This document shows, in pieces, positions 2 through 39,853 of a stretch of 64,000 nucleotides of DNA. The stretch is from sequence record KJ019143.1. One strand, 5' to 3'. The notes below the pieces were generated by a model that was not told where the DNA came from, searched no databases, and worked only from the letters and a program-made list of their open reading frames with translations. Positions within the stretch are counted from its first letter, which is position 1, and each line of letters opens with the position of its first letter. The position numbers and the translations under genes are program-made.

Positions 2-3000
2 TTTGATTCTGCCACTTCATTCATAACTGGTGATCTAATTTCATATAGAGTTATCTCAGTAGAAAGAACAGGTATTCCCCTTATCACTGAAGGTGAATAC
101 TTTGTAGAGGTTCTCAGCAACCCCAGAAAGATTAAACTATATGTATCACCTTCCTTTATTGGAAGTGATAACTTTGTTGGATTCGTGTATAACGATGCAG
201 TAGGTGCTCATGCATTCACTCTAGAGGAACAGAAAGATAGAAGAATCAATACTAAGAATGTATTCAAGAAGATTCCCTTCACAGCAACCAAACAGAATAT
301 CACTATCCCTAGAACACCCGATGTAACCCCCTCAGGTTCCCCTGTGGCAGTTCTTACTAATGGTGTAGAGGTATTGTCATATAAGTCACCAGATAAGGTG
401 TTCTTGGGTCCTTTAGAAGAAGTTGTTCCTGTTGCTTCTGGTGAGGGTTATAGTGTTATTGGACCACCCAATATCCTAATCACACCACCTAATATTCAAG
501 TTACAGATCCAACTGGTATTCCTACTGATGGTGGTGTTGCTAGAGTATCACCAGTTATCTCTGGTAGGTTGAAGAAGATCTATATCGATCCACAAGACTT
601 TGATATTGAGGAAGTATTCTCAATCACTGTTGTTGGTGGTAACAGTCGTGGTGCCACAGCAAAACCACAGATTTCTAAGAGAACTCGTTCTATCCCCTTT
701 GATACGAGACTTGATATCTACGGTGGTGGTATTAATCCAAATGAAGAGACCATCCTATTCTTAACTGAACACAAACTCGCCAAGGGTGATGCAATTATCT
801 ACGAAAACAACGATACACAAAGTATTGGTGTTAATGTTGCTGGTGGTAGTAACATCTATAATGGCCAGACACTATCTAACGGTGCTGTGTATTTTGCAGA
901 ACCCCTTAATAATGTAACCATTAAGATCTATGAGACTCTAGAAGATTTGAACTTGGGTATCAATACCGTTGGGTTCACTTCAAGTCAAACTGGGTTTGGT
1001 GTTCAGGACTTTACTACTATTCCTAGAAACCAACTCACTGGTGCTCTCATCACAGATGATGGTGGTGAGTTTGTATATCGTAAGATGGAGTTCCAACCAG
1101 AGAACATCTATCCTGAGTATGATGAGTTGAGATACGACGGTCATGGTTTCTCCAGTGGTGATTTGGTGGAGTATGGAACCTTTGGTTCTGTTGTTGGTGG
1201 TCTATCTACTGAGAAGCAATACTATGTTGATGCTTTAGATGAAAATATCATCAAACTATCTGATGCCGGTATTGGTGGAACAAGTAGGTTTGACTATGAT
1301 AGGAAGGACTATGTTGATTTCACCAACATTGGTGTTGGAACACAGTTTATCAAGTACCCTGATGTCACTGTCAATGTTGTAGTATCCTATGCCTCGTCTA
1401 TCACTGGTATCATTACAGCAACACCTATTATCCGCGGTGGTATTATTCAAACTTATGTTGATACTGGAGGATACTATGGTTCTGATATTCTCAACTTCGC
1501 CAAGACACCAGAAGTAACAGTTCAGACTGGTGAAGGTGCTAGAATCAAACCAGTTATTGTTAATGGTAAGGTTACCACAGTTCAGATTCTAAGTAAGGGT
1601 ATCAACTACCCACCCACACCAGATCTTCGTGTTATTGATAAGTCTCGTAAAGGTGCTGGTGCTCTTCTTCGCCCAGTAGTTATTGATGGTGCTATCCAGA
1701 GTGTTGTTGTTATTAGCACTGGTGAAAACTATGATCCATTGAATACTGATATTACAGTAATTGATACTGCTAGACGATGTATTCTTGTTCCTAGAATTAC
1801 ACCTCTCACAGTTAATACCTTTGCTAGATTTGGATTCGAAGGTCTATCTAATAATGACTACTCGGTTGTTGCCTATGACAGAAAGATTCGTGAGGATGTA
1901 TATGGTGACCTAGGTGCTTCCCACTCACCCATCATTGGTTGGGCAAACGATGGTAACCCCATCTATGGTGGTTTTGGTTTCGATGATCCAGAGAACTCCA
2001 GTTCTGGTTTCCGGGCGATGAGAACTTCCTATGAACTCTTCCCTGGTGAGATCTATGGTCGTCCCCCACTAACACTATATCCTGCTGGTTCTTTTGTTGA
2101 GGACTACAAGTTTACAGATAATGGTGATCTAGACATCTATAATGGTAGGTATGGTAGAACTCCTGAGTACCCTAATGGTGTGTATGCATACTTCGCTGGT
2201 ATCTCCACTGATACTCAGTCACTAGCAAGAGAACCACAATTCCCTTACTTCATTGGTCCTGAGTTTAGGGATGGATTGGGTATTCAAGATAATACTGTAT
2301 CCCAAGATTTTGATATTAATAATAAGGATATTTTCCGTAATACTTTCCCATATGCCGTAGGTAACCCTATTATCGGCAGTGAGTTCCTAGATCAATCATA
2401 CTTAGAGGATACTCAGGATTCTATTATACAATCTATCAATAATGGTACTGTTGATAACTTAACCATCGTTGGTGCTGGTGTTAGTTACTCTGTTGGTGAT
2501 ATTGTTAATTTTGATGATACTTTCGACTACATTAGTGTAGTTGTAGATCAGGTAGATGGTCCCGAGGTAACACAGATTCAAACTCTCATCAAGAGTTATG
2601 GTAAAGCAGAAACCAAAGTCATTAAAGTTGATAACACAACTGTTCGTGTTTATGTTGATCCCTTCCACGAGTATCTTGATGGAGATAAAGTTGTAATTAG
2701 TGGTCTATCAACAAACACAGATCAACTCAACGGGACTCATGAGATTAACTTCATGAGGGAGCAAATGACAATGTTTGCTCCTATTCCTCCTACTTTGTTT
2801 GAGACAGTATCTGATATCTTTGTCAATACTATTTCAGATAAGGTTTCTGTTGGTTCTAGTATTACTGTTGGTCTTGGCACTCTATCGGAGGATATGGAAG
2901 TTATCAACATCTTCCCTATTAATAAGGCACTTCGGGTTAAGAGACCAGTAGGTTATGGTTTCACACACCCAATTGGTGATGCTGTTAACATTGCTCCTAA

Positions 3001-6000
3001 TTACTTTGATATTAAGAAGAATGTAGATTCATTCCCGTCTGAGATTGATGTTGAGTACTACTTCAACCCACACCAAACAGTGGCAGTTGGATTGGAGACT
3101 GGTGTAAGTGTTGGTTTGGTGTATTCAATTGGTACTATCGATAAGAATATCTCAGTACAGACTCAAAGAATATATGCACCATCCCATGGTTTCAGAACTG
3201 GTGAGGAGATTACTTTTGAGAAGAATGATACTGATACTGCATTAGTTGTAACAGACGGTAGTACTGTATATACACTACCTGGTGTAGGTAATACAAGTAA
3301 TGCATATGTTGTATCACTATCCAAAAACTATATTGGTATTAGAACAGTAACAGATGGTCCTGATCTATTCTTCTCTACTGATGGTTCCGATTCTCCTCTA
3401 TATTCTATTAAGACTAATCGTTTCGCTGAGACTGCATTAGTAGATAGAATTCAGGCAGAAGTTAAAACGAAAACGGATCATAGGTTGGGGAATGACGATC
3501 AGATATTTACTGATGTTATTTCTTCTGGAAAATCAGGTGTCGGTACTAACCCCAACATCAAACTTGAGTTCGATGATTCATCACAATCACTTATTGTAGA
3601 TCCATACTTCACACAACCTAGTGATATTGATACGGTTAATAACCTAATTAATATCAATAACCACGGTTATACTAATGGGGATATTGTTCTATATCAAAAC
3701 TATGGAAGTTCTATTGGTGGTTTAACAACTCATCACAAATATTACACTATTCCCTTTGATAGGGATAAGTTCTATGTTGCTGAAACATTTGTTGATGTAA
3801 GACCCGGAACTAAACTACCTGTGAATCTAACTTCTGTTGGTATTGGTTCCCATAAGTTCTCCAAGGTCAATCCACCACTACTCATCACTAATAATAATGA
3901 TATTGAGTTTGATGTGTCATCACCAACTCTATTTGGTAAAACACTAGAATTCTTCTTTGATCGGACTCTAACTGAAATATTTGATAATAACAGTATAGAC
4001 AATGTATTTGTTGTTTCTGGTGTATCTACTGAGGGATACGAGGATGCTAGGAAGTCTATTAGATACTCTGATAACAATCCAGATGTATTCTTCTATGGTA
4101 TTACTGAAGGTGGTTATATTTCCACTGCAGATACTGAAGTATCTAGAAACAACTCTATTAGATATGAGGCAAGTGAGTACGCAATTGAAGGTAGAGTAAC
4201 CGTTATAGACGATAGCACCTTTACCTATACACTCAATACTATTCCCGAGAAGCCACTATACACTAATCCTGATACACAACTCTCATACAAGACTTCCTCT
4301 AGTACTGCTCTAGGTGGTGTTGGTAGATTGAATATCATCTTCAGTGGTAATAACTTCCCAGCTCTACCTGAGTTTGAGGGTATTCAAACTGAGTATGGGC
4401 AGAACGCAACTATCAGAGCAGAGTCTGATGATATTGGAACACTTGCTTCCTTCAGAATCCAGAACGCTGGTTGGGATTACTCCGCTGATAATACACTTCG
4501 CCCCTTTGGTGTTATTCAACCAACCATTAGATTTGATAATAGTGACTTTGTTACTGAGGTTACTGTTCTTGATGGTGGTAATGGATATCAGAACCCCCCT
4601 AATGCTGTTCTAGTAGACTCTGTAACAAGAGAAGTAGTAGATAATGGATCTATCATCCTAGAGGTACAATCATCCACCATCACAGATGTTATTGTTGAGG
4701 TTGCTCCTTCTGGTTTATCCAAGGATCTCCAAGAACTATGGACTGTCAATAATAGTAATGGTATTCCTATCCTACTAATTGGTAACATTGATAATGTTGC
4801 TGGTGTAGTTACATATACAGTACAGACTCCTATTGAGGGTTATGCGACACCACCATTCTCAGTTGGTGATAGAGTATTTGTTGAGAATATTCTAGTAGAT
4901 CAAGATGCTCCCCCCTCTAAACTCAATTCTGGTGATTATGGGTATCAGTTCTTGGAAGTTGTTGCCGTAACACCAACAAACCCAATCACTATTGGTATTC
5001 AGTATCCTGAAGAAGCTATTGGTAACCTAGGTTATGGTGTTACTTTCCAACAGGCTTTCTCTGGTATTGTTAACGAGGATATCTATCCTAAGTTTGCAGT
5101 ACAACAGACAACTGCAGTCTTCCTAGAGGGTGAGAGACTTTCTATCTTTGATTCCTTTGGTAATCTTGATGAGACTGACCTAGTTGTGGAAGAGTCCAAC
5201 ACTAGTTTCTTTAAAGTTACTGGAAACTATGATTTATTGGTTGGTGATGTACTCAAGGGTAACAATAGTGGTGTTATTTTAACTGTTACTGAAATTGACA
5301 GTAGTAGTTGTAGATATCTAGTTGATTCTATCTCCAGAATCAACACTGGTTGGAACGATAAGACAGGTTTCCTTAATGAGGAGACACAGAACCTACCAGA
5401 TAACGATTACTATCAGAATCTATCTTACTCAATTAAGAGTACAATTAACTTCGAGGAACTTATCAACCCAGTCAATAGATTAGTACACCCTTCCGGTCTA
5501 AAGAACTTCTCTGATACCAAGATTGAGTCTATCGGTGATATTGGTGTTGGTAGTAGTGAGAGCTCTGAGTCAACAGTTACTATTGACTTTATTGGTCTAA
5601 CTGATATAGCAGAAACTCCACTGAGAGTTGATCGCATCAATGTATTCGACTTGGGTTGGGATGCCAATGTCAATAACAACAGATCTAACGCCATTAGACT
5701 TCAGAGTAGAACTCCTAACAAGAGACTAACTGACTATATCGAAGTTCGTACTAACAGAGTATTGATGCATGACGACATCAGTAACGAGTTTATTGACTCA
5801 GATAATGCCTCTTCCAAGTCCCCCTATAGTGAGTTCAATATTATCACTGGTGAATATACCAGAGGATTGGTTCAGGCAAGAAATCCCTTCACTGATCAAG
5901 TTCAATTCACTGAGATTATTGTTTTATCAGTTGATAACAGTGCCTTCACTTTACAGAAGGCGAGTATCTCTGATAATGATCTTGGTTATGGTATCTTTGA

Positions 6001-9000: not shown

Positions 9001-10855
9001 TGATCCAGCATACTTTAACCTTCCAGTTATTGGTGTATCTAGGAGAAATGTTGGATTCACAACTATCACTGGTAAGAATCTCTTTGTAACTGTTGAGGTA
9101 TCTGCAGCAACCACCACGGCAATCGGTCGTAGTGAGTTCTTTGAAGTTAGTGGTTACCAAATCACTAACCAGGGTTATGGTTTTGAAGAAGGTGATGTTA
9201 TTGAGGTTGTTGGTATTCCTACTGATAAGAATCTATCCCAACCAATTGAACCCTTCCAACTCACAGTTCTAGACACCTTCACCGATAACTTCTCCGCCTG
9301 GAACTTCGGTGAAACTGATTATATTGATAGTATCAAGACTCTACAGGATGGTTCAAGACTTAACTTCCCACTTTCATACAAAGGTGAGGAACTATCCTTC
9401 GAATCAAATCCCTCCAATGAAGACTCTGCGGCAATTGATTTAGACGCTATCCTCCTCATCTATGTGAATACAGTACTACAAGTACCTGGTGTAAGTTATG
9501 AGTTTACTGGTGGTAACACCTTTACATTCTCACAACCACCATTCCCACAGGATGATGTTGATATTTACTTCTATAGAGGTAAGAGGAATATTGATAGTAC
9601 AGTTATTACTGAAATTGATGAATCTATTAGACCTGGTGATCAGTTACAACTTGTTAAAAACAATAAGTACAATGACAATGTATTCATTGACCTAACCAGA
9701 ACACAGGACCTTAGAACAGTCACAGAGATTGCTTCTTCTGACACAGTTAGAACTAATATCTACTTTGGTAACAAAGACTTAGATACTCTAAGAGAAAGGC
9801 AAGTCGGTTGGGAAAAACAGAAGAGAGATATCTTCATCTATGGTGAACCAGCACCTAAGACTAGAGATAGTCTAGAACCTGTTATTGTACCAACAGCGGC
9901 AATCATCAGAGATACCTCCAAATCACAAACAGAACTCTTTGTTAGTAACTCTGAGATATTTGTTTATGAAGAAGATGTTCCTGGTTCTAGTATTGTTCTA
10001 ACCAATATCAGTGGTGAGATCTATAGACCAGTTGAGTATAAGTACAATCCACCAGTACTATTTGAACCCGCGTCAATACGCGCGAATGTAGATGGTAATG
10101 GTAAAGTAACTTCACTCACAATCCTAGACGCAGGACAAGGTTACCCAACAGGTACTGAAATCACTATTGGTATTTCTTCCACGGGTGATAGGGCAGAGGT
10201 TGGTACTACTATCCTCAATCCAATTGATGGTTCTATTATCTCTGTTATCCTATCTAAGAGTGGATCTGGTTACAATCAAAGTAACCCACCATTCGTTCTT
10301 ATTTCAGAACCACAGGTAGATATTGAACCTTTGGAACTTATTCCAAATATCCAAGGTTTCAGTGGTATTGTTACTGGTATTCAGGCAACTACAGGTTCCT
10401 CTGGGGCAACCAAGGGTATCCGGGTATTCTACACAGTAGATTCCACAGTTGTTGCTTCTGAACTAAATGCAGGTTACTCAGTTGTTCTATCTAATACTGT
10501 TGTTGGTAATGGTGTTGAAACTATCGGAACTAACGCAGCAACCGTGGTTGGTTTGGGAACACAGTTCCTAGATGCTGTTTATGAGATTAGGTCTAATGGT
10601 AACCTAGGAATAAATGGTGTATGGGAAGCAAATGTATCCAATGGAACTAACATATCTGGTATTGATATTTCTGGAGATAACCTCGGAAGTTTCAGCTGGG
10701 GTAGGTTATCCAATGTTCCAAGAGATATTGATTTGGCACTCTCATACAATGTAGATGGAACTACATACTCACCCAATATGGATAACTACCCAACTCTCAA
10801 GAGAAGTAGTGAAGGTCTCCGTAACGAAGGTGGTATCGCTAAGAGGGTTCTGTAG
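2..10855 (+). CDS. Giant baseplate wedge/structural protein (cyanophage gp7/VrlC-like), 5' truncated by window edge
   Basis: The frame is open from base 2 (FDSATSFITGDL...), so the true start is upstream of the track start at 185. It has repeated G-x-G-Y beta-rich motifs and a YHYH-like segment (HSPIIGWANDGNPIYG...GRTPEYPNGVYAYF), and lies directly before gp8. Confidence 0.7.
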   Translation, partial: FDSATSFITGDLISYRVISVERTGIPLITEGEYFVEVLSNPRKIKLYVSPSFIGSDNFVGFVYNDAVGAHAFTLEEQKDRRINTKNVFKKIPFTATKQNITIPRTPDVTPSGSPVAVLTNGVEVLSYKSPDKVFLGPLEEVVPVASGEGYSVIGPPNILITPPNIQVTDPTGIPTDGGVARVSPVISGRLKKIYIDPQDFDIEEVFSITVVGGNSRGATAKPQISKRTRSIPFDTRLDIYGGGINPNEETILFLTEHKLAKGDAIIYENNDTQSIGVNVAGGSNIYNGQTLSNGAVYFAEPLNNVTIKIYETLEDLNLGINTVGFTSSQTGFGVQDFTTIPRNQLTGALITDDGGEFVYRKMEFQPENIYPEYDELRYDGHGFSSGDLVEYGTFGSVVGGLSTEKQYYVDALDENIIKLSDAGIGGTSRFDYDRKDYVDFTNIGVGTQFIKYPDVTVNVVVSYASSITGIITATPIIRGGIIQTYVDTGGYYGSDILNFAKTPEVTVQTGEGARIKPVIVNGKVTTVQILSKGINYPPTPDLRVIDKSRKGAGALLRPVVIDGAIQSVVVISTGENYDPLNTDITVIDTARRCILVPRITPLTVNTFARFGFEGLSNNDYSVVAYDRKIREDVYGDLGASHSPIIGWANDGNPIYGGFGFDDPENSSSGFRAMRTSYELFPGEIYGRPPLTLYPAGSFVEDYKFTDNGDLDIYNGRYGRTPEYPNGVYAYFAGISTDTQSLAREPQFPYFIGPEFRDGLGIQDNTVSQDFDINNKDIFRNTFPYAVGNPIIGSEFLDQSYLEDTQDSIIQSINNGTVDNLTIVGAGVSYSVGDIVNFDDTFDYISVVVDQVDGPEVTQIQTLIKSYGKAETKVIKVDNTTVRVYVDPFHEYLDGDKVVISGLSTNTDQLNGTHEINFMREQMTMFAPIPPTLFETVSDIFVNTISDKVSVGSSITVGLGTLSEDMEVINIFPINKALRVKRPVGYGFTHPIGDAVNIAPNYFDIKKNVDSFPSEIDVEYYFNPHQTVAVGLETGVSVGLVYSIGTIDKNISVQTQRIYAPSHGFRTGEEITFEKNDTDTALVVTDGSTVYTLPGVGNTSNAYVVSLSKNYIGIRTVTDGPDLFFSTDGSDSPLYSIKTNRFAETALVDRIQAEVKTKTDHRLGNDDQIFTDVISSGKSGVGTNPNIKLEFDDSSQSLIVDPYFTQPSDIDTVNNLININNHGYTNGDIVLYQNYGSSIGGLTTHHKYYTIPFDRDKFYVAETFVDVRPGTKLPVNLTSVGIGSHKFSKVNPPLLITNNNDIEFDVSSPTLFGKTLEFFFDRTLTEIFDNNSIDNVFVVSGVSTEGYEDARKSIRYSDNNPDVFFYGITEGGYISTADTEVSRNNSIRYEASEYAIEGRVTVIDDSTFTYTLNTIPEKPLYTNPDTQLSYKTSSSTALGGVGRLNIIFSGNNFPALPEFEGIQTEYGQNATIRAESDDIGTLASFRIQNAGWDYSADNTLRPFGVIQPTIRFDNSDFVTEVTVLDGGNGYQNPPNAVLVDSVTREVVDNGSIILEVQSSTITDVIVEVAPSGLSKDLQELWTVNNSNGIPILLIGNIDNVAGVVTYTVQTPIEGYATPPFSVGDRVFVENILVDQDAPPSKLNSGDYGYQFLEVVAVTPTNPITIGIQYPEEAIGNLGYGVTFQQAFSGIVNEDIYPKFAVQQTTAVFLEGERLSIFDSFGNLDETDLVVEESNTSFFKVTGNYDLLVGDVLKGNNSGVILTVTEIDSSSCRYLVDSISRINTGWNDKTGFLNEETQNLPDNDYYQNLSYSIKSTINFEELINPVNRLVHPSGLKNFSDTKIESIGDIGVGSSESSESTVTIDFIGLTDIAETPLRVDRINVFDLGWDANVNNNRSNAIRLQSRTPNKRLTDYIEVRTNRVLMHDDISNEFIDSDNASSKSPYSEFNIITGEYTRGLVQARNPFTDQVQFTEIIVLSVDNSAFTLQKASISDNDLGYGIFEGRSLASSEYQMRFTPFNTDDFDIDLKLLSHKFIFSGESAEEIGYVNLAGNTLSTPDAASTQIYGASNSNNRAVVVHANITTIDGLLYYYEIYAFTDGTDVYYAPYGYSSDVLKGFNSELDGDFNATLQGGKLAIYFTNNTGGPVSITTKSIEFKQSFSGTSPYRFKKNNVPDTEERSIILDSVSTAGVSTQTTEVFRYDTTLFQSVRSIVHISGTDVGAIHQVMTINSDGSTYCEVYPFITEGDEVDSTSGIGTFGSSIDGTDMVLTFYPDAAIGSQALTLTSYNETFYRELDEVNYTFGRPLVYSESEENYYLERYIAPLGLRNNLLRFPLTYEGIPIYEKAFDPATTISINNGNLTLFNITEHFFSPAEELYYLPDTTLANNLKSPIEIQPVVDYRGITTSTMPDRVYAIKRDLNVFQLAPTASDALAGQAIVITGFGTGISHRLGMMKKLEKTIITIDGVIQSPITSALKTFNLDAPLGFDDEYAVLTGIGTIRVGDLFLIDEEYLKIDNVGLSTSQTGPISNTGTIPLIEISRGVVGSSATSHTSGSDLDLYRGSFNIVESDVVFTEAPAGRGEININESNLVQVNSSFQGRTFLQREYDQIALFDDISDLFNGSDYEFNITSAGSTIGEIENGSGVLTINDIYQTPTTDNNAGNNYFYSYGAQTGINTLTFTGITSTNGQRVESRFDINQNQIPRGGVIVSLGSTPGLGYAPLYGAKITPVVTGGVITDIVTTNRVGFTTDVLWADYDNETGDLVVSGIGSALTTQFNITDADYRNTSGVLIITSATSLISAGINPGDIMYLRGMDFSCTSGGAPATLTYPDQDPVYAVDRIVDEFRFSVNAGISTIPHTYVSGGTWQKYSPFQFGREQINPKQVYLNGLEFDCTNSPFITTNIFPDSFESASFVTRDDDAHFRLNVGIASFTHDYVGSGIFGQYIENNPGSGYIDRVSIAVTDPNHSGTPAEIVGIPTAGGELSFTIIGGGSGYNQPTTDTFAPDPAYFNLPVIGVSRRNVGFTTITGKNLFVTVEVSAATTTAIGRSEFFEVSGYQITNQGYGFEEGDVIEVVGIPTDKNLSQPIEPFQLTVLDTFTDNFSAWNFGETDYIDSIKTLQDGSRLNFPLSYKGEELSFESNPSNEDSAAIDLDAILLIYVNTVLQVPGVSYEFTGGNTFTFSQPPFPQDDVDIYFYRGKRNIDSTVITEIDESIRPGDQLQLVKNNKYNDNVFIDLTRTQDLRTVTEIASSDTVRTNIYFGNKDLDTLRERQVGWEKQKRDIFIYGEPAPKTRDSLEPVIVPTAAIIRDTSKSQTELFVSNSEIFVYEEDVPGSSIVLTNISGEIYRPVEYKYNPPVLFEPASIRANVDGNGKVTSLTILDAGQGYPTGTEITIGISSTGDRAEVGTTILNPIDGSIISVILSKSGSGYNQSNPPFVLISEPQVDIEPLELIPNIQGFSGIVTGIQATTGSSGATKGIRVFYTVDSTVVASELNAGYSVVLSNTVVGNGVETIGTNAATVVGLGTQFLDAVYEIRSNGNLGINGVWEANVSNGTNISGIDISGDNLGSFSWGRLSNVPRDIDLALSYNVDGTTYSPNMDNYPTLKRSSEGLRNEGGIAKRVL

Positions 10856-23127: not shown

Positions 23128-23928
23128 GTGGGTGAATATTTTTATCATGAGATCATCAAGAGAACTGTTGTCGGTTTCGGCAATCTCTTCAATGGTCTTA
23201 CTATCCAAAAGGTAGACAAGAAGCAAAACGTCATTAACGTGATGAAGGTGCCTCTTGCATATGGTCCTACCCAGAAGTTTCTGGCAAAGATTACTCAGCA
23301 GGGTGAGTTAAACCAACCTACTGAGATTACTTTACCACGTATGTCTTTTGAGATGAACTCTCTTGCATATGACGGATCGCGGAAGACCGCACCCACTCAG
23401 ATGTTTAAGACACTAGATAACGGGGAGACACTTAAAAAGGTTTATCTTCCAGTTCCATATAATATTGGTTTTGAACTTAATATTATGACCAAGTTGAATG
23501 AGGATGCTCTACAACTTGTCGAACAAATTCTTCCATATTTCCAACCTTCCTTTAATATTACTGTCGATCTAGTTGATCAGATTGGTGAGAAGAGAGATAT
23601 CCCTGTGGTACTCGACTCCATCAACTTCACTGACGACTATGAAGGAGACTTCACAGGTAGACGTATTCTAATCTATACTCTATCATTCACTGCCAAATCC
23701 TACATGTTTGGACCTGTCAGTGAATCTGGGGATGGTCTTATTCGTAAGGTTCAGGTTGATTATCATACTTCAACCGAGAGGGATTCACCTCGTGAGGTTC
23801 GTTACACAGCCACACCAGACCCAGTTGATGCCGAACCCACTGATGACTTTGGGTTTAGTGAAGAAACTGTAGTATACTTTGATTCTAAAGTATACAGTCC
23901 AACTCAAGGTGAGGATTACACTCCATGA
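23128..23928 (+). CDS. gp15: Tail sheath stabilizer / tail terminator gp15
   Basis: YFYHEIIKRTVVGFGNLFN, KVPLAYGP.QKF, LPRMSFE, EQILPYFQP; GTG start. Confidence 0.92.
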   Translation: MGEYFYHEIIKRTVVGFGNLFNGLTIQKVDKKQNVINVMKVPLAYGPTQKFLAKITQQGELNQPTEITLPRMSFEMNSLAYDGSRKTAPTQMFKTLDNGETLKKVYLPVPYNIGFELNIMTKLNEDALQLVEQILPYFQPSFNITVDLVDQIGEKRDIPVVLDSINFTDDYEGDFTGRRILIYTLSFTAKSYMFGPVSESGDGLIRKVQVDYHTSTERDSPREVRYTATPDPVDAEPTDDFGFSEETVVYFDSKVYSPTQGEDYTP

Positions 23929-24350
23929 GCTTTGAATCAATAGATGATGCACTGGATATTGAATCCAGTATTGTGAAAAAAGAAGAAGAGGTGGAGGTTA
24001 CTCCTACCAATTCTAAAGAGAAACCATCTACTCCCCAAACTGAACAAGATTACAACTATAGTAGGGGACAACTCTATTCTCTCATTGAGAAGGGACAAGA
24101 GGCGGTTAACAACGCATTAGAACTCGCCAACGAAGGTTCTAGTGCTAGATCATATGAGGTTGTTGGTGGTCTTATTAAGAATGTCGCAGACGTTACTGAT
24201 AAACTACTAGATCTCCAAAAGAAGGTTAAGGATCTGGATGAAATTTCAGTTACTAATAACCAAACCAATGTAACCAACAATTCGGTATTCGTCGGATCAA
24301 CTACTGAACTCCAGAAGATGTTGAAAGAAGGATTGTTGAATAACGATTAA
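23925..24350 (+). CDS. gp16: Terminase small subunit gp16
   Basis: DYNYSRGQLYSLIEKGQEA...SARSYEV, NNSVFVGSTTELQKMLK. Confidence 0.9.
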   Translation: MSFESIDDALDIESSIVKKEEEVEVTPTNSKEKPSTPQTEQDYNYSRGQLYSLIEKGQEAVNNALELANEGSSARSYEVVGGLIKNVADVTDKLLDLQKKVKDLDEISVTNNQTNVTNNSVFVGSTTELQKMLKEGLLNND

Positions 24351-24355
24351 CTACT

Positions 24356-24769
24356 ATGGCTTACGAAGAAGAAAATCAGTGTAACTCTACACCTGAGGGT
24401 GAAGATTGCCCTAAGCACAAGAAGAAGTGCTGCAATTCTGAGGAAAAGAAACGCAAAAAGGGGATGTACGGTCTCCAGGATGAGGATAGTGAAGGCGATG
24501 AGTCCTCACAAGAGAATGGTGGCATGCCTCAGGATAGTGCCAATGAGGAAAGACAACTTAACCCAGACACTGACCTGAAGGACATGTCCAGTGATAGTAA
24601 GAAGAGGGCTATGGATTCTTTCCGTGAAAGAAGTTCTGAAGCTAAGAAAAGAAAATCAGATAAAGATAAGAAGGATGAATTGGCAACTGAACGCATGACA
24701 AAGGGCATAAGGTTCTTTGACAAACAGGGTTCAGGTTATATTAAAAAAGGTAAAAAGAGTTACGACTAA
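24356..24769 (+). CDS. Charged hypothetical protein with N-terminal Cys cluster
   Basis: 137-aa ORF; QCNSTPEGEDCPKHKKKCC; C-terminal KGIRFFDKQGSGYIKKGK. Confidence 0.6.
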   Translation: MAYEEENQCNSTPEGEDCPKHKKKCCNSEEKKRKKGMYGLQDEDSEGDESSQENGGMPQDSANEERQLNPDTDLKDMSSDSKKRAMDSFRERSSEAKKRKSDKDKKDELATERMTKGIRFFDKQGSGYIKKGKKSYD

Positions 24770-24771
24770 CC

Positions 24772-25383
24772 ATGACACTAATTAACGAACATAATCTTGG
24801 AGCTTGGAAAGCTTTAAACCCCCAAGACAAAAGACTACAAGCATTAACACTCTCAGAACTATTGGAGAATGCCGATCCAACTAGCGTAGATTTCAGTAGT
24901 ATTACCTTTAAGGGTCGTACAGACGGTCTACTCGGAGATGGTCTCGATTGTGCTGAAAGTATTGGTTTTGTTGTATTTGATTGTGTATGTCTGTTCCTAG
25001 GAGCAGCAACACTAAGAGCTTCAGCCACTGCTGAGGTAGCCGAAGATATGGCTAAAGCTGCAGAACCTGTTGTTAACCAACTAACACAGTATATTAGAAC
25101 CATTTCTGATTCAGCATCATCAACATATGATGTTGCTTATGCTGTGTTTAAGGTAATCTCTACCATCTACAGTGGAGGTGCTTTAGGTGCTGTTTGTGGT
25201 GTGTTCTTCACGTCCCTAACTTGGTACAACGCTATTCTCTATGGAATGACTGCTGTTGGTACTATTATGGCTGCTTTGGCAACTGATGGTGCTGCTGAAA
25301 TTGGTATTATTGTTGTGGAAATAGCAACAGCTGGTTTCCTAATTTCCGACAGTGTTGCCTGCTCTAAAGCATGCAACTACTGA
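24772..25383 (+). CDS. Hydrophobic, Cys-containing hypothetical membrane protein
   Basis: 203-aa ORF with several Ala/Gly-rich hydrophobic helices and 6 Cys. Confidence 0.6.
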   Translation: MTLINEHNLGAWKALNPQDKRLQALTLSELLENADPTSVDFSSITFKGRTDGLLGDGLDCAESIGFVVFDCVCLFLGAATLRASATAEVAEDMAKAAEPVVNQLTQYIRTISDSASSTYDVAYAVFKVISTIYSGGALGAVCGVFFTSLTWYNAILYGMTAVGTIMAALATDGAAEIGIIVVEIATAGFLISDSVACSKACNY

Positions 25384-25484: not shown

Positions 25485-28295
25485 ATGGGTAATCTACACA
25501 AATGGTTTTCAGGTTCCAAGTCCAAAGACGGCAAGTCTGGATGGGTGAATGTAAAGACTGGTGGTACCTGTGCAAGTGATGAACCCGGAGAGGGCACACC
25601 CAAGTGTGTGTCTTCATCTAAAAGAGCTAGTATGACCAAATCCGAAAGGGAGTCTGCTTCTCGTAGAAAGAAAGCTGCTGACCCTGGACAACAACAAAAG
25701 TCAGGTGCTGCTAAACCAACTTACGTATCTACCGACAAGCCTAAGAAGATGAAAAAAGAACATTTTTCTAATTGGAGGGATGATACACCAGAACCAATGG
25801 TCAATGAACTCTTTGGATTGGGTAAGAAGAAGGAAAAGAAAAACAACGGTTCTGGTGGTTCTTTCTCAGCTTCTACGGCAGAGGCGAATGCTAGATCCAG
25901 GGGGTGGAAACCTGAAAACGAAAAACCAAAACCCATGGGTGCTTTTGGTCCAGAAAAGGGAACGAGCAAATCCCCAGACCAATTCAGAAATGTGAAGAAA
26001 GCTTTGGGTATTCGTCCAAAACCAGAACCCAAAGTTACAAGTCAAACAAAACCAGAACCCAAAGTTACAAGTCAAACAAAACCAGAACCCAAAGTTACAA
26101 GTCAAACAAAACCAGATCCTACACCCAAGTCCAATCCATATTCTGGAAAGGATAAGTTAAAACCCCAAAGTTTTAGTACTGCAGTTAAATCTGGTACTAA
26201 AATGAAAAAGAGTACTCCATCAGCCCCAGGTAAAATTGTGACTCAACAAGGTAATCAAAAAGAGCAGTTTTCTAACTGGAGAGATAACTACGTAGCCACT
26301 GAGCACGAGTTCATCGATCTCATCAAACCAGAACCTATGGTAGGCATTTCAGAAACCAAGGAAGGTCAGATGAAAGCTGGTAGGGAGCAGTATAAGAAAG
26401 AGAAGGAGGAAGGTCGTTATGGTGGAACCAAACCTTCTAATGAGAGAGTCGCAAAACTCATGAAGAAGCTGAAGGAGGAGACCAAGCAAGATGGTCCCGA
26501 ACCTACAACGAAACAGACTCGTGGTGCTATGAAGAACATTCGTAGTAAAATGAATACTGCAAGTCACAAAGACCCAGATAAGAAGAAGACAAAGCAAGAA
26601 CTAGCTTTCCAAAAGGCTAGAGCTAAGGCTTGGGGTATGACTGAAGGAAAGGAAGAGAAGAGAAAGGATGCAATGCCCGAGGGTGATGTTGGATATGAGA
26701 TTCATAAGAAAGCAGTTGCCCAATACAACAAACAGAACCCTAGTAAGAAGGTGAAGGAGGAAGTAGAAATCTCCGAAGAGGATAAGAAAGGTTCAGGTAG
26801 TGGTAAGAAAGACGCCTGTTACAATAAGGTGAAGGCATCAGCTTCTGTATGGCCATCAGCTTATGCTTCTGGTCGTTTAGTTCAGTGCCGTAAGAAAGGT
26901 GCTGCCAACTATGGTAAATCCAAGAATGAGGAGTTTATCAGTATTGTAGCCTCCGAGTATTTCATCAATGAAGGACTCAATGATGAGGGAGTGGCGGAAC
27001 TAGTTGATTTGTTGGGACCCATTCAGTTTGGTGAATTGGTTAATGAGATTGCTGAGGGTGTAGAAGAAGATCTACTTACTGAAGCTAGAGCTGGTGGAGT
27101 TAAGATTGAACCCAAGAATAAGTCTGGTACTAGAGTTTCAGATCTATCCAAGGGAGCTAGAACTAGAGCTATTAACACACTCCGTAAAGAGAAGGCAGCT
27201 AAGAGAGCTGGTGAAGGTGAAGGTGGCAAGGGCAGTCTAAAGGACTCCCTAAAATCACAAGCAAAGGCAGCTAAGAAACCAGAACCCAAAAAGGCTAAGA
27301 AGGAAGAACCCAAAAAGGAAGCAGCTAAACCAGCAGTTGAGAAGGCTAAAGCCACTCAACCTAAGAAGAGAGGTTTCTTAGATTCTGTAGCCCGTCAAGT
27401 TAATAAGGGTATGGATCGTCATAGAAAGGCAATGGAACTAGCCCGTGAAACTGGTAAGGTAGCTAAGAAGGCAGCCAATATTGGTGGTCAAGTTGCTAAA
27501 GGTGCAGTTCAAGGTGTTAAGGACACCGCCAAGACAACCAAAAACGTAGCTGATAAACTAAAAGAAGAATACGTATTGGTTGTATCTGAAGAGTGGAAGC
27601 CTGACCCCACTGAGAAACGTGAAAAGAAAGCGGCTAAGCTAGGTAGGGATGAAGAGATCGAGAAAGGCAAGTCCAAGAAATATGGACGCGATGAATCCAA
27701 GATTGACAAACTCTACAAGCGTCGTATGGCTGTTCAGTTCAAAAAGAAAATGAGTGAGGAAAGACTAGACGAACTCAAGTGTTGGAAAGGTTACAAGCGT
27801 AAGAAGGGTTCTACACCTGGAGCTCCTGGTTCCTGTGTGAAAGAAGGTTTCTCCAGTTGGAGAGACGACCTTGACCTTATGGAAGGTGTTGCAGCTTGGC
27901 AACGTAAGTTTGTTTCTGAAGAATCCAAAAGAGAACTTCAGATTCGTGCTTCGAAGGGTGACAAGGCAGCCATGAAGAAACTTCATCAACTTCGTGCCGA
28001 TGGTAAGATTGGTAAAGAACCTGGTTTTGAACCTAAGAGAGATCTTCCTGAAGGTGCAGCATGGACACGTAAAGAGGGAAAGAATAAAGCCGGGGGGCTT
28101 AACGAGAAGGGACGTAAGTCTTACGAACGAGAGAACCCCGGCAGTGACCTCAAAGCACCACAACCTGAGGGTGGTAGTCGCAAGAAGTCGTTTTGCGCAC
28201 GTATGAGCGGAATGAAGAAGAAACTAACCTCTTCTAAGACTGCTAACGATCCCGATTCAAGAATCAATAAGTCACTAAGAAAATGGAACTGCTGA
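25485..28295 (+). CDS. Lys/Glu-rich modular hypothetical protein (candidate capsid-internal polyprotein)
   Basis: 936-aa ORF; short basic Cys/Trp modules; FS(N/S)WRD motif three times; internal tandem repeat. Confidence 0.7.
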   Translation: MGNLHKWFSGSKSKDGKSGWVNVKTGGTCASDEPGEGTPKCVSSSKRASMTKSERESASRRKKAADPGQQQKSGAAKPTYVSTDKPKKMKKEHFSNWRDDTPEPMVNELFGLGKKKEKKNNGSGGSFSASTAEANARSRGWKPENEKPKPMGAFGPEKGTSKSPDQFRNVKKALGIRPKPEPKVTSQTKPEPKVTSQTKPEPKVTSQTKPDPTPKSNPYSGKDKLKPQSFSTAVKSGTKMKKSTPSAPGKIVTQQGNQKEQFSNWRDNYVATEHEFIDLIKPEPMVGISETKEGQMKAGREQYKKEKEEGRYGGTKPSNERVAKLMKKLKEETKQDGPEPTTKQTRGAMKNIRSKMNTASHKDPDKKKTKQELAFQKARAKAWGMTEGKEEKRKDAMPEGDVGYEIHKKAVAQYNKQNPSKKVKEEVEISEEDKKGSGSGKKDACYNKVKASASVWPSAYASGRLVQCRKKGAANYGKSKNEEFISIVASEYFINEGLNDEGVAELVDLLGPIQFGELVNEIAEGVEEDLLTEARAGGVKIEPKNKSGTRVSDLSKGARTRAINTLRKEKAAKRAGEGEGGKGSLKDSLKSQAKAAKKPEPKKAKKEEPKKEAAKPAVEKAKATQPKKRGFLDSVARQVNKGMDRHRKAMELARETGKVAKKAANIGGQVAKGAVQGVKDTAKTTKNVADKLKEEYVLVVSEEWKPDPTEKREKKAAKLGRDEEIEKGKSKKYGRDESKIDKLYKRRMAVQFKKKMSEERLDELKCWKGYKRKKGSTPGAPGSCVKEGFSSWRDDLDLMEGVAAWQRKFVSEESKRELQIRASKGDKAAMKKLHQLRADGKIGKEPGFEPKRDLPEGAAWTRKEGKNKAGGLNEKGRKSYERENPGSDLKAPQPEGGSRKKSFCARMSGMKKKLTSSKTANDPDSRINKSLRKWNC
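26017..26116 (+). repeat. Perfect 30-bp in-frame tandem repeat, 3.3 copies (KPEPKVTSQT)
   Basis: caaaaccagaacccaaagttacaagtcaaa x3 followed by caaaaccaga. Confidence 0.95.
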
Positions 28296-28401: not shown

Positions 28402-29613
28402 ATGTCTATCCTAACTCACACTAATAATAACTACGAAAGGTACGATGAGGACAATGTTCTAGCGTCACCTCAGCCTGCATTTAGGAGTGAGAGTATGGAT
28501 GCAGTTGGTTGGACTAATTTTACCTGGAAAGATTTTGATGGTGATTATGTCAAGACTCTAGTGGGTGGTGGTATAACTTCTATTAATGAGTATGTGAAGA
28601 GAGACGTAGATAATAATATAGTCACTCAACCCCAATACATCAGGCACGATATAGACAATAACCCAGTAGGTAGTTTGAATCCACTAGAAATTGTAGGTGT
28701 TGGTAATATCACAGCACCTAACGGATTTGCTGTCGGTAGGGATATGGCTGGTCAGGTTGCTGGTTATCAGGGTGGTACTGAACCCATCACTGTTGAAGGT
28801 CAGTTACAGAAACAAGAAACCCCTGGTGGTGCTTGGATTGGTATTAGTCCTTGGACGGCAGTTGATACTGCAGTAAAAGAAATAGACTCTTCTTTGGTGG
28901 GAGCTAAACTTCGTATTTCTACTAGAATTCAAGATGCCATAATCGCTCCATCATATCTCACTACCAATACTCCTGCTTCGGATGTTGTTGTTGGTGAGAT
29001 GACTCCCGATGTGAAAGGTACTCTTACTTCTAGTGGAGCGGACCCTGCATATCCAGGAGATGTACTTACTCAGACAGAAGGCACTATAACCGGTGGTATC
29101 GCTCCATTTGCTAAGTCATATCAATGGTTTAGAAGAGAAACTGGCACCACGAATGCGTATGCATTCTTTGGTGCTCCAGATGGATTGACTTATACTATTC
29201 AGTATAGTGATATTGGTTATGATGTTAAAGCAAGAACTAGGTGGCAAGATTCATATAACTATCTTAGAACCGTCGGTACGATTCCAAACCACATTGAGGT
29301 TATAGCAGAACCACTAGAATTGGTATCAAAGGGAACTCTCGATGGAGTTGGTCAGTCAGGCACAGTCCTAACACAAACTGCAGCAGTATTCAGTGGTGGT
29401 GTTCCCCCATTCACTTATAGATATGAATGGGTTAGGAGAGTGACTGGTGAGTCTGGATTCTTCGAGTTTGGTGCTCCAGATGGTCTTCAGTATATTATTA
29501 GGTCTTCTGATATCGGTTATGATATTAGAGGAAGAACCGAAATCTTTGACTCCCTAGGAAATTCGAAGAGTAGTAGTTCTACTATTCCTGGAGATGTTTC
29601 AGTAACATCATAA
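28402..29613 (+). CDS. Ig-like repeat protein (three ~100-aa beta-sandwich repeats after a short N-terminal domain)
   Basis: Repeats GDVLTQT...GG..PF..SYQW.RR...FGAPDGL.Y.I..SDIGYD occur twice clearly, plus one degenerate copy. Confidence 0.65.
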   Translation: MSILTHTNNNYERYDEDNVLASPQPAFRSESMDAVGWTNFTWKDFDGDYVKTLVGGGITSINEYVKRDVDNNIVTQPQYIRHDIDNNPVGSLNPLEIVGVGNITAPNGFAVGRDMAGQVAGYQGGTEPITVEGQLQKQETPGGAWIGISPWTAVDTAVKEIDSSLVGAKLRISTRIQDAIIAPSYLTTNTPASDVVVGEMTPDVKGTLTSSGADPAYPGDVLTQTEGTITGGIAPFAKSYQWFRRETGTTNAYAFFGAPDGLTYTIQYSDIGYDVKARTRWQDSYNYLRTVGTIPNHIEVIAEPLELVSKGTLDGVGQSGTVLTQTAAVFSGGVPPFTYRYEWVRRVTGESGFFEFGAPDGLQYIIRSSDIGYDIRGRTEIFDSLGNSKSSSSTIPGDVSVTS

Positions 29614-29642: not shown

Positions 29643-31289
29643 ATGGCGGATACTAAGTATCTTGGGAATCCAAACCTGAAGAAGGCGAACGTTGCTGTCA
29701 ACTTCACTTTGGAACAGGTGAAGGAGTATGTTAGATGTAAAGAAGACCCAATCTTTTTTGCCAGGAACTACATTAAGATTGTGTCCCTGGACCATGGTCT
29801 TGTGCCATTTAAGTTGTATGATTTCCAGGAAGACTTAGTTAGAAGTTTCCATGAGAAGAGATTTACTATCTGTAAGATGCCTAGACAGACAGGTAAGTCT
29901 ACAACCTGTGTGGCGTTTCTTCTCCACTACTTGGTATTCAATGATAATGTCAACGTCGGTATCCTAGCAAACAAAGCAGCAACTGCTAGAGAGATTCTAG
30001 GACGACTACAGATTGCATATGAAAACTTACCGTCGTGGATGCAACACGGTATTGTTTCTTGGAATAAAGGTTCAGTGGAGTTGGAGAATGGCAGTAAGAT
30101 ATTGGCAGCTTCTACGTCTGCAAGTGCTGTCCGAGGTATGTCTTTTAATATCATCTTCCTCGATGAATTTGCGTTCGTTCAGAACAATATTGCAGAGCAG
30201 TTCTTTGCCTCTGTTTATCCTACTATTACTTCTGGTAAATCAACGAAAGTAATCATCGTTTCCACGCCACATGGTATGAACCACTTCTACCGAATGTGGC
30301 ATGATGCTGAGAGGGGTATAAATGAGTACAATCCAATTGAAGTTCACTGGTCTCAGGTACCGGGAAGAGACTCCATATGGAAAGAACAAACTATTAAGAA
30401 CACTTCTGCTGAACAGTTCAAGGTTGAGTTTGAGTGTGAATTCATTGGTTCTGTTGATACTTTGATTGCTCCATCTGTTCTCAGGGCGATGGAATACAGA
30501 GAACCAATTAGGAAGCAAAAGAGTTTAGATATATTCTACGAACCAGAAAAAGATAACATCTATGTAATCACCGTAGATGTCGCCAGAGGGGTCGGAAAGG
30601 ATTACTCTGCCTTTGTGGTGTTTGATGTCACAAAGTTCCCCTACAAGGTCGTGGCGAAGTATAGAGACAACGAAATCAAGCCAATGGTATTCCCCAGTAT
30701 CATTGAGAGGGTGGCAAAGTCATATAATAGGGCGTGGTGTCTTATTGAGGTGAATGATATTGGTGACCAAGTTGCCTCTATCCTAAACTATGATTTGGAG
30801 TATCCCAACCTCATGATGTGTGCTATGAGAGGTAGGGCTGGTCAGCAACTAGGTGCGGGTTTCAGTGGGTCCAAGACTCAGTTGGGTGTGAAGATGAGTG
30901 TTGCCACCAAGAAACTAGGTTGCTCCAACCTCAAGACTCTGGTGGAGGAAACTAAACTAATCTTTGAAGACTACAATATTGTTCAGGAACTGACGACCTT
31001 TATTCAAAAGAACAACTCATTCCAAGCGGAAGAGGGGTGTAATGATGACTTGGCTATGTGCTTGGTTATCTTCTCTTGGGTAGTGGCTCAGGACTACTTC
31101 AAAGAGATGACTAACAATGATGTGAGAAAGGAGATATACAATGAAAAGGAGAACCAGATTGAACAGGATATGTCACCATTTGGTTTCTTCTCTGACGGAA
31201 CTGAAGAGGGTACCTTTGTAGATAATAGTGGGGACGTGTGGCACACTGATGAATATGGGGATATGAGCCACATGTGGGAATATATGTAG
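29643..31289 (+). CDS. gp17: Terminase large subunit gp17
   Basis: YLGNPNLKKAN, Walker A PRQTGKST, Walker B IIFLDEFAF, nuclease DVARGVGKDYS and DDLAMCL. Confidence 0.97.
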   Translation: MADTKYLGNPNLKKANVAVNFTLEQVKEYVRCKEDPIFFARNYIKIVSLDHGLVPFKLYDFQEDLVRSFHEKRFTICKMPRQTGKSTTCVAFLLHYLVFNDNVNVGILANKAATAREILGRLQIAYENLPSWMQHGIVSWNKGSVELENGSKILAASTSASAVRGMSFNIIFLDEFAFVQNNIAEQFFASVYPTITSGKSTKVIIVSTPHGMNHFYRMWHDAERGINEYNPIEVHWSQVPGRDSIWKEQTIKNTSAEQFKVEFECEFIGSVDTLIAPSVLRAMEYREPIRKQKSLDIFYEPEKDNIYVITVDVARGVGKDYSAFVVFDVTKFPYKVVAKYRDNEIKPMVFPSIIERVAKSYNRAWCLIEVNDIGDQVASILNYDLEYPNLMMCAMRGRAGQQLGAGFSGSKTQLGVKMSVATKKLGCSNLKTLVEETKLIFEDYNIVQELTTFIQKNNSFQAEEGCNDDLAMCLVIFSWVVAQDYFKEMTNNDVRKEIYNEKENQIEQDMSPFGFFSDGTEEGTFVDNSGDVWHTDEYGDMSHMWEYM

Positions 31290-36573: not shown

Positions 36574-37224
36574 ATGAAACTAATTACAGAAGAAATTAAC
36601 AAGGTTGAATTTATTGTCGAAGAAAACAATGGCAAACAGTCATGTTTTATTGAGGGAAACTTCCTTCAGGGCAATATTAAAAACCGAAATGGTCGTGTCT
36701 ATAGAACCGAGACACTAGCTCGTGAAGTTGCTCGTTACAATGAACAGTATGTTCAGAACGGACGAGCTCTCGGTGAACTTGGGCATCCTGATGGACCCAC
36801 AGTTAACTTGGACCGAGTATCACATAACATTATTTCACTTCGTCAAGAGGGGAATAATTTCATAGGTAAGGCAAAACTTCTTGATACTCCTATGGGAAAT
36901 ATCGCTAAGAGCCTTATTGGTGAAGGTGTTAAACTTGGAGTTTCTTCTCGTGGTGTTGGTTCCATTAGTGAAACGAAGCAAGGATATAAGCTTGTTGGTG
37001 AAGACTTTATGTTGGCAACCGCAGCTGATATTGTAGCTGATCCTAGTGCCCCAGACGCTTTTGTTCAGGGTATCATGGAAGGAAAAGAGTGGGTTTTTGT
37101 TAATGGACTCTTGAGAGAGAGTGACATTAAGAGCACACAGTCTACAATTGACAAACTAGTTGTCACAAAGGAACTTGAGGAGAAGAAGATTCAACTTTTT
37201 CAAGATTTTCTTTCAAATCTATAA
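36574..37224 (+). CDS. gp21: Prohead protease gp21
   Basis: NRNGRVY, RALGELGHP, GVSSRGVGS, DIVADPSAPDAFV. Confidence 0.97.
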   Translation: MKLITEEINKVEFIVEENNGKQSCFIEGNFLQGNIKNRNGRVYRTETLAREVARYNEQYVQNGRALGELGHPDGPTVNLDRVSHNIISLRQEGNNFIGKAKLLDTPMGNIAKSLIGEGVKLGVSSRGVGSISETKQGYKLVGEDFMLATAADIVADPSAPDAFVQGIMEGKEWVFVNGLLRESDIKSTQSTIDKLVVTKELEEKKIQLFQDFLSNL

Positions 37225-38449: not shown

Positions 38450-39853
38450 ATGTACAATTCCGCAAACTCCGAATTTCTCCAGGAGAAGTGGGCACCAATC
38501 CTCGAGCACGGTGAGTCCATCCAGGACGCACACAAGCGTGCCGTAACTGCCCAACTTCTAGAGAACCAGGAAGTAGCCCTTTCCGAAGAGCGTGCTTTCC
38601 TTTCAGAAGCTCCAACAGTAAACACCGACCCTAACGCAACTGGCAACGCTGGTTTCTCTGGTAATGGTGATCAATCAGTAGCTGGTTTCGATCCAGTACT
38701 CATCAGCCTCATCCGTCGTTCAATGCCTAACTTGATGGCATACGACCTTTGTGGTGTTCAGCCAATGAACGGTCCTACCGGTCTTATCTTCGCGATGAGA
38801 AGCCGTTATGACTCACAGACAGGCGACGAGACCTTCTACAACGAAGTCAACTCTGCCTTCTCCGCACAGAACCAGTCCGGTACAGCTACTCAGGGTAACT
38901 ACTCTGGTCAGGTTGGCGCTGGTAACACAGTTGGTTTCGGTACAACCGCACAACGTGGTTCTAACCCTTCTATCCTCAACCCCGAGCCCGGTGACCAAGT
39001 TGGTTACAACGTAGGCCAGGGTATGTTGACCCAGGACGCTGAGAACCTTGGCGAAACTGGTACAGAGTTCAATGAGATGGGCTTCTCAATCGAGAAGGTC
39101 ACCGTAACTGCTAAGTCACGGGCACTCAAGGCTCAGTACAGCATGGAATTGGCTCAGGATCTCAAAGCGATCCACGGTCTAAACGCCGAAGCTGAACTAT
39201 CTAACATCCTCGCCTCTGAAATTCTTTCAGAGATCAACAGAGAAGTTGTTAGAACTATCTACAAGTCAGCTGTATTCGGTGCTCAGAACAACGTAGCCAC
39301 TCCTGGTGTATTTGACCTAGACGTTGATTCCAACGGTAGATGGTCAGTTGAGAAGTTCAAAGGACTTATCTTCCAGATCGAAAGAGACGCTAACGCGATC
39401 GCGCAACAAACTCGTAGAGGAAAGGGTAACTTCATCCTTTGTTCCGCGGATGTTGCTTCAGCTCTAACCATGGCTGGTGTACTTGACTACACCCCAGCAC
39501 TCAACGCTAACCTTAACGTTGATGACACCGGTAACACCTTCGCTGGTGTTCTACAAGGTAAGTATAGAGTCTACATTGACCCATACGCAGCTAACGTCAG
39601 CAACAACCAGTACTATGTCGCTGGTTACAAAGGTTCCTCACCTTATGACGCTGGTCTCTTTTATTGCCCCTACGTGCCATTGCAGATGGTCCGTTCAGTT
39701 GGACAGGACACCTTCCAGCCACGTATCGGATTCAAGACCCGTTACGGAATGGTCGCAAACCCATTCGCAGAAGGTCTTGAAGCTGGCTATGGCCGCATCA
39801 CTCCTAACAGTAACGTCTACTACAGACGCGTTCAAGTGAAGAACTTGATGTGA
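38450..39853 (+). CDS. gp23: Major capsid protein gp23
   Basis: DPVLISLIRRSMPNLMAYDLCGVQPMNGPTGLIFAMRS, KSRALKAQY, GFKTRYG, YYRRVQVKNL. Confidence 0.99.
   Translation: MYNSANSEFLQEKWAPILEHGESIQDAHKRAVTAQLLENQEVALSEERAFLSEAPTVNTDPNATGNAGFSGNGDQSVAGFDPVLISLIRRSMPNLMAYDLCGVQPMNGPTGLIFAMRSRYDSQTGDETFYNEVNSAFSAQNQSGTATQGNYSGQVGAGNTVGFGTTAQRGSNPSILNPEPGDQVGYNVGQGMLTQDAENLGETGTEFNEMGFSIEKVTVTAKSRALKAQYSMELAQDLKAIHGLNAEAELSNILASEILSEINREVVRTIYKSAVFGAQNNVATPGVFDLDVDSNGRWSVEKFKGLIFQIERDANAIAQQTRRGKGNFILCSADVASALTMAGVLDYTPALNANLNVDDTGNTFAGVLQGKYRVYIDPYAANVSNNQYYVAGYKGSSPYDAGLFYCPYVPLQMVRSVGQDTFQPRIGFKTRYGMVANPFAEGLEAGYGRITPNSNVYYRRVQVKNLM

Follow-up and report, generated by a model that had tools for sequence, protein, structure and literature searches.

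What does a long, lysine-rich open reading frame (ORF) encode when it lies between the two terminase genes of a phage and carries short basic modules separated by hydrophobic-x-Glu tripeptides? The question is raised by a stretch of 64,000 nucleotides from sequence record KJ019143.1 (hereafter the window), whose source is Synechococcus phage ACG-2014f (family Kyanoviridae, genus Atlauavirus; ORF 100% identical). The ORF of 936 amino acids (aa) sits in the late morphogenesis block between gp16 and gp17, and its 103-kDa translation product is 17.7% Lys and 23% Lys plus Arg, with an isoelectric point of 9.87. A sequence-only reading had proposed that such a gene may package a cassette of small peptides released by gp21, the prohead protease; all of the sequence quoted in its favor is present, and the ORF is real. 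We consider it fairly probable that the product is a gp21-processed polyprotein of internal head proteins. The evidence comes from the placement of the junctions, from the leaders of stand-alone relatives and from the detection of relatives in virions.

Conserved modules and their junctions

Conserved blocks were defined with a BLAST coverage map of 110 long homologues, corrected for composition because Lys-rich linkers align everywhere. Four blocks emerge, A (residues 2-88), B (444-about 500), C (766-808) and D, which is DUF6321 (853-936); conservation is poor in between. The AlphaFold2 model, built on a 67-sequence alignment, resembles beads on a string, with confident modules and 51% of residues at a predicted local distance difference test (pLDDT) value <50. 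A helical hairpin at residues 812-838, in an inserted segment, is also predicted confidently, and the model of DUF6321 is a small helical domain (pLDDT 80). The eight Cys residues lie in four pairs (29/41, 445/468, 766/784 and 904/936), and FSSWRDDLDLME is an internal element of the ORF. Modules found here in one protein occur as separate genes elsewhere.

Taken as a raw count in one protein, enrichment of hydrophobic-x-Glu is modest and comes partly from an acidic helix at residues 494-533: there are 11 [IL]xE sites versus 5.7 in shuffles (p about 0.02), and 23 [ILVMF]xE sites versus 13.7 (p about 0.006). The strong signal is the placement of the sites relative to the modules. Strict [IL]xE sites end 2-3 residues ahead of the core of B, of C, of a duplicated AAW start and of DUF6321, a pattern that random placement of 11 sites reproduces 5 times in 10^6. 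Six of the 11 strict sites fall in segments with pLDDT <50, and the sites ahead of module B, of the duplicated AAW start and of DUF6321 are among them.

The same arrangement is seen across the family. Each module was anchored in about 350 homologues and only distinct upstream contexts were counted, de-duplicated and uncorrected for kinship, which tempers the resulting figures: [ILVMF]xE lies within 8 residues upstream of module A in 93% of distinct contexts, of B in 76%, of C in 97% and of D in 63%, versus 7.6% of control windows in the same proteins. In most contexts, module borders in homologues coincide with the Glu motifs, a comparison that the sequence-only reading had named. The offset of the junction Glu before the module is fixed (0 residues for A, 1-2 for B, 1-4 for C and 2-3 for D), and the upstream context is otherwise variable, from Gly/Asn runs to Lys-rich stretches. 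Where a module stands at the protein N-terminus the motif is absent, as in M/GNLHKWF of the 936-aa ORF (throughout, a slash marks the junction or predicted cut); where module A is internal, as in P-SSM3, it is preceded by ELVKE/GNLHKWF.

All seven junctions listed earlier were found; GMTE/G falls in a stretch that few homologues share, and some sites are off module borders. To that list can be added EISE431/E, ahead of module B, together with GISE290/ and KLKE331/, which bound a strain-variable cassette of 42 aa. The recurrence of KE-x-FS(N/S)WRD three times is likewise borne out (residues 91-99, 259-267 and 785-793). These FSxWRD elements hold an aromatic-x-x-aromatic pair, as do Tyr4 and Phe7 of the T4 leader, and then a hydrophobic-x-Glu (h-x-E); by regular expression, an FSxWR motif is followed by a site in 19 of 48 cases, a figure that is partly informative.

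Strains of ACG-2014f differ by clean indels, and these are bounded by junction motifs. One covers residues 91-258, between two KExFSNWRD copies; another covers residues 290-331, between GISE/ and KLKE/; the third, a deletion of residues 807-861 in other strains, removes the predicted hairpin and lies between two AAW[QT]RK starts. Family-wide, the N-terminal module varies as well, with at least six types. The strain indels and N-terminal module types fit the shuffling at the Glu sites that had been expected.

The protease itself is encoded in the window. When gp21 is aligned with its T4 counterpart, His and Ser stand opposite T4 residues 85 and 140, which we take to be catalytic. The FLSE53/APT site of gp23, also noticed in the sequence-only reading, aligns with FLTE65/AEIG of T4; a gp21 of the S77 type and this aligned site together make a T4-like [IL]-x-Glu specificity likely. 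The gp21 protein itself starts (36574-36594) with MKLITE/E, reminiscent of LIE-9, a motif close to the start of T4 gp21 whose possible role in autocleavage has been discussed.

Leaders on relatives and detection in virions

In the T4 record, IPII and IPIII begin MKTYQEFIAE/A and IPI begins MKTFKEF...ITE/A; Mullaney and Black reportedly described the capsid targeting sequence of the three T4 proteins in 1996. Residues 4 and 7 of the leader serve prohead targeting, and residues 8 and 10 serve cleavage (PMC9026906). The strongest new evidence is the presence of putative leaders of this type on stand-alone relatives of the modules. Stand-alone DUF6321 proteins of 90 aa from metagenomes begin MKTYKDFITE/VAAW, MKCYKEFISE/VA, MTFDEFITE/A or MKTFKELRKQLEE/S, with the targeting and processing residues 4, 7, 8 and 10 conserved. 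One such gene lies immediately upstream of gp17, the locus of the 936-aa ORF, on T4-like contigs with portal, Peptidase_S77 and scaffold genes. Among cultured cyanomyoviruses, S-CREM1_179 begins MKTYNDFITE/VA, S-SZBM1_192 begins MKTFKQYITE/A and P-SSM7_194, a GC119 member, begins MKTYSQFIEE/G.

Two further forms of DUF6321 protein are without a T4-like leader: those of the podoviruses HTVC115P, P-SCSP1a and S-CBP4, and an abundant MPGAALRG... form from a non-T4-like phage. In the three podoviruses the stand-alone DUF6321 gene lies inside a block of capsid, scaffold and tail-tube genes. Behind it, P-SCSP1a and S-CBP4 carry a small GLYANIHAKRKR-type protein, and P-SSM7_194 has that module fused to a T4-like leader in front.

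Can the leader predict packaging? A DNA pattern for M-x-x-[FY]-x-x-[FY]-h-x-E was searched in five cyanomyovirus genomes and in the near-identical RefSeq record of ACG-2014f. The five genomes gave 11 matches, on a single strand within each genome, versus 2 control matches. The cytidylyltransferase SSM1_190 of S-SM1 (family GC190) begins MKKFSAFLNE, with related starts in P-SSM7_191 (MKKFSAFLTE) and in a Syn9 match (MKKFSAFLSE); in the ACG-2014f record NC_026927.1, the single match is the start region of the annotated cytidylyltransferase, MAMRSFLTFLTE/A (142791-144005). The GC190 enzyme is present in S-SM1 virions with 25 peptide counts (PMC3037559 Table S8), and a cytidylyltransferase is among the proteins of S-SZBM1 virions. 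By this example, the leader appears to track packaging in cyanophages.

Relatives of the 936-aa protein itself have also been found in virions. T4-GC119, whose S-SM1 member SSM1_115 is the positional orthologue of the ORF, gave 13 peptide counts in purified S-SM1 virions (PMC3037559 Table S8). In S-SCSM1, the 517-aa protein S-SCSM1_29 has modules A, B, C and DUF6321, each with a preceding h-x-E, and is labelled “virion protein” in its record; the virion proteome in the S-SCSM1 paper comprises 45 proteins, and we infer that the label stems from that virion mass spectrometry.

Two other genes at related loci are of interest for their motifs. S-SZBM1_194 (707 aa, 2502-4625 of its locus slice) is a Lys-rich multi-module protein with a DUF3008-like start; its internal ITYREFIAE/G is identical at 8 of 9 positions to the IPII/IPIII leader of T4, and it may be a second polyprotein-like case. 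A conserved gp16-gp17 island protein of about 105 aa, absent from the window, begins MK[ST]FKQF[LM]SE/SVNISGDFNG in S-CREM1 (locus-slice coordinates 2397-2726), S-SZBM1 (5249-5566) and S-SCSM1 (9216-9536), and is a candidate for another head-targeted cargo protein.

Other readings of the same evidence

Several points weigh against a packaged and processed polyprotein. Cleavage is a prediction for every family member, and the published proteomes of relatives, being tryptic searches, give presence only, without peptide positions. The 936-aa ORF starts MGNLHKWF... and so has no N-terminal capsid-targeting leader of the kind that T4-type internal proteins carry, and the window holds no ORF that starts with one; leader-like motifs in the 936-aa ORF are internal only (FSNWRD... 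and SEYFINE/G). The missing leader is one point where the proposal of a late-gene cassette of small basic modules with prohead-protease sites falls short, the conserved junctions, the leaders and virion detection of relatives and the strain indels all being in its favor. In addition, the late-promoter motif ATAAATA was not found directly upstream of the ORF, so expression timing is taken from position only. Very short leaders, MNE/G and MQE/G, also keep the Glu, and the junction Glu could be a part of each module instead of a cut site. This last point leads to a different reading, in which the product is a virion-internal, disordered, multi-module protein that is packaged yet left uncut or trimmed once, with h-x-Glu-Gly as an N-terminal cap, a relic or a recombination scar. 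The Glu of MNE/G and MQE/G may then belong to module A, the strain indels could arise by recombination between repeated junction sequences, and giant phages offer cases in which a head protein is processed in one phage while its homologue in another is not (PMC5694885). We nevertheless regard an uncut or once-trimmed protein as unlikely: four modules of no relation to one another, in linkers that are otherwise unrelated too, share the same preceding three-residue motif, which is dispensable when a module starts the protein and matches the phage's own gp23 site.

The virion data are themselves divided. Syn9 gp114, a T4-GC119 member, was not detected in Syn9 virions (PMC3037559 Table S8), S-SZBM1_192 is not among the 30 virion proteins detected in S-SZBM1, and the module homologues of P-SSM3 and P-SSM7 lie outside the structural region, near the primase gene and beside replication genes. 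These observations count against the polyprotein and would suit a cytoplasmic nucleic-acid-binding or regulatory protein that is no virion component, its detections reflecting sticky basic proteins that co-purify; the authors of the virion proteomes themselves note that highly expressed proteins can survive caesium chloride (CsCl) purification. Such a role is distinctly improbable in view of two independent detections (S-SM1 and S-SCSM1), the T4-type head-targeting leaders on stand-alone relatives and the location of the gene inside the head and packaging block, with relatives that adjoin capsid genes in three podoviruses. An accident of composition, in an ORF of low complexity rich in Lys and Glu, would account for an [IL]xE enrichment as modest as that reported above and for several sites in one acidic helix, but it hardly deserves credence when placement relative to modules is non-random and thousands of homologues keep the motif in a variety of contexts. 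A tail fibre or tape-measure-like protein was rejected for want of support. External capsid decoration was also rejected: podovirus P-SCSP1u has an icosahedral capsid without decoration proteins, and its relative P-SCSP1a has a DUF6321 gene adjoining the capsid gene.

Proposed maturation, known systems and genomic setting

If the ORF does encode a gp21-processed polyprotein, the 936-aa protein would be made late, alongside the neighbouring head and tail genes, late co-transcription being suggested by position, and would enter the prohead core. The three FSxWRD elements are candidate, and speculative, internal targeting signals. Within the core, gp21 would cut after the Glu of hydrophobic-x-Glu in the disordered linkers immediately before each conserved module, freeing about 8-9 fragments with predicted lengths of 37-230 aa. 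Modules A, B, C and DUF6321, all small and very basic and with two Cys each, would remain in the head with the DNA, and the fragments may perhaps be ejected together with it. In other T4-like cyanophages the modules are separate genes with T4-like leaders of their own; here they would have been fused, their leaders turned into internal junctions. On charge alone, we favor the view that DUF6321 and the other modules are DNA-associated internal proteins.

The closest parallel is with T4 IPI, IPII and IPIII, small basic proteins of the head interior whose leader, M-K-T-[YF]-x-x-F-[IL]-x-E, is cut after Glu by gp21; MKTYQEFIAE/A of T4 and MKTYKDFITE/VA of the cyanophage stand-alone DUF6321 proteins are a close match, and hypervariable gene content is common to T4 internal-protein loci and this one. 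Unlike the T4 proteins, the cargo modules here are fused, with internal motifs and no N-terminal leader; they have no sequence similarity to IPI-III, and the gp16-gp17 location differs from that of the T4 loci. T4 Alt, gp22, gp67 and gp68 are alike in that gp21 also cuts internal and C-terminal [IL]-x-E sites in them, and T4 core protein fragments persist as internal peptides; they differ in being a single enzyme or degraded scaffold, whereas each fragment here is a separately conserved module that is also an independent gene. The cuts in Alt fall at ITE-6 and LTE-619, and gp22 is cut in many places (PMC5694885). The phiKZ-like giants (201phi2-1, phiKZ and SPN3US) have a gp21-related protease that makes several cuts within head and inner-body proteins after the Glu of a three-residue motif (PMC5694885); in contrast, their motif is S/A/G-x-E, and the substrates are unrelated proteins that do not consist of a series of mini-proteins found independently elsewhere.

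By sequence and position, the ORF belongs to a known family that has gone by several names: T4-GC119, a “structural protein” (Sullivan et al. 2010), PHROG 3477 and the DUF6321-containing cyanophage proteins. PHROG 3477, with no function assigned, matches it end to end (E=0, residues 1-936), and Pfam DUF6321 (PF19846) matches residues 865-934 at 8.8e-21, the only Pfam match to the ORF besides a sub-threshold DUF5872 likeness of module B. The conserved blocks and C-terminal DUF6321 are shared with the family, homologues number at least 4773, and members lie downstream of gp16 in ACG-2014f, S-SM1 (SSM1_115), Syn9 (gp114), S-P4 and S-SCSM1 (S-SCSM1_29). T4-GC119 genes are known to range from 276 to 2985 nt. 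A PDB sequence search gave chance-level matches only, and Foldseek with the DUF6321 model found nothing in PDB and only DUF6321 relatives in BFVD, so the fold offers no clue to function. An ESM Atlas search with module A matched only unnamed viral clusters.

In the searchable literature, T4-GC119 is described only as hypothetical or structural; leaders, protease sites and a polyprotein reading go unmentioned. Within the open literature, to which the search was confined, no paper on DUF6321 came up, nor one connecting cyanophages with internal proteins or capsid-targeting sequences. The polyprotein of internal head proteins proposed here would extend the T4 internal-protein system in a form for which no description turned up in that literature.

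If the proposal is true, a large class of “hypothetical” marine phage proteins would be capsid cargo loaded in the T4 manner, and the set of injected proteins would be predictable from sequence, by means of either the leader or the motif at the junctions. Encoding of capsid cargo in one protease-processed polyprotein, with cassettes that differ between close strains, would point to an arms-race function. T4-like cyanophages rank among the most abundant ocean viruses, and marine metagenomes contain thousands of DUF6321-type mini-proteins to which no role has been assigned. A more tentative extension, which we hold to be somewhat doubtful, is that the gp16-gp17 island is a cargo-shuffling locus, where a portable targeting and cutting element lets phages fuse, split and swap small injected proteins through recombination. 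The ORF would then deliver strain-specific DNA-protecting or anti-defense peptides to the host along with the genome, and the leader rule would reveal, by sequence alone, the packaged cargo of marine T4-like phages, enzymes like the cytidylyltransferase included.

Table 1. Features of the 936-aa ORF and of associated head and terminase genes, in window coordinates
Feature	Coordinates	Strand	Remarks
ORF P0001, 936 aa, Lys-rich mosaic protein, T4-GC119 / PHROG 3477	25485..28295	+	PHROG 3477 match over full length
Module A, aa 2-88, GNLHKWF...C29...C41, directly after Met1	25488..25748	+	Preceded in homologues by h-x-E/G
Junction motif copy 1, KEHFSNWRDDTPEPMVNE/L, aa 91-108	25755..25808	+	Left border of 168-aa cassette lost in some strains
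Perfect 30-bp tandem repeat x3.3 (KPEPKVTSQT), disordered linker	26017..26116	+	Copy number differs among ACG-2014f strains
Junction motif copy 2, KEQFSNWRD...EHEFIDLIKPEPMVGISE/T, aa 259-290	26259..26354	+	Abuts module B in some homologues
KLKE331/ site, right border of 42-aa cassette (aa 290-331)	26466..26477	+	Cassette absent in other ACG-2014f strains
EISE431/ site, two residues ahead of module B	26766..26777	+	Glu431 nearly invariant (family alignment)
Module B, aa 433-482, DKKGSGSGKKDACYNKVK..WPSAYASG..C468, most conserved block, weak DUF5872 likeness	26781..26930	+	
Acidic helical segment, aa 483-533, leader-like SEYFINE/G plus LLTE/A	26931..27083	+	
RLDE763/ site, three residues ahead of module C	27762..27773	+	
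Module C, aa 766-787, CWKGYKRKKG....SCVKE	27780..27845	+	
Junction motif copy 3, FSSWRDDLDLME800/G, aa 788-800	27846..27884	+	In homologues directly precedes DUF6321
Inserted segment, aa 801-856: duplicated AAWQRK start, then helical hairpin, then DLPE856/G	27885..28052	+	
DUF6321 module (D), aa 857-936, ends ...RKWNC	28053..28292	+	
gp16, small terminase	23925..24350	+	Left border of gp16-gp17 island with the ORF
gp17, large terminase	29643..31289	+	Right border of gp16-gp17 island
gp21, prohead protease, Peptidase_S77	36574..37224	+	
gp23 L51-S52-E53, predicted maturation site FLSE53/APT	38600..38608	+	Aligned with T4 FLTE65/AEIG

The gene order around the ORF is gp13, gp14, gp15, gp16, two small ORFs, the 936-aa ORF, a 403-aa ORF, gp17, gp18, gp19, gp20, gp21, gp22 and gp23. 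Of the two small ORFs, 24356-24769 encodes 137 aa of acidic and basic low-complexity sequence that contains Cys, and 24772-25383 a very hydrophobic, Cys-rich protein of 203 aa (phrog_3518); Pfam gave no match for either. ATAAATA, which resembles the T4 late promoter, has 10 matches in the window, a total not above chance; the + strand carries all 10, several of them a short way upstream of late genes (10862, 31309, 36065 and 37230). The 403-aa ORF (28402-29613; phrog_3552, no Pfam match) contains an internal duplication of about 55 aa (…PPF..Y.W.RR.TG…GAPDGL.Y.I..SDIGYD…).

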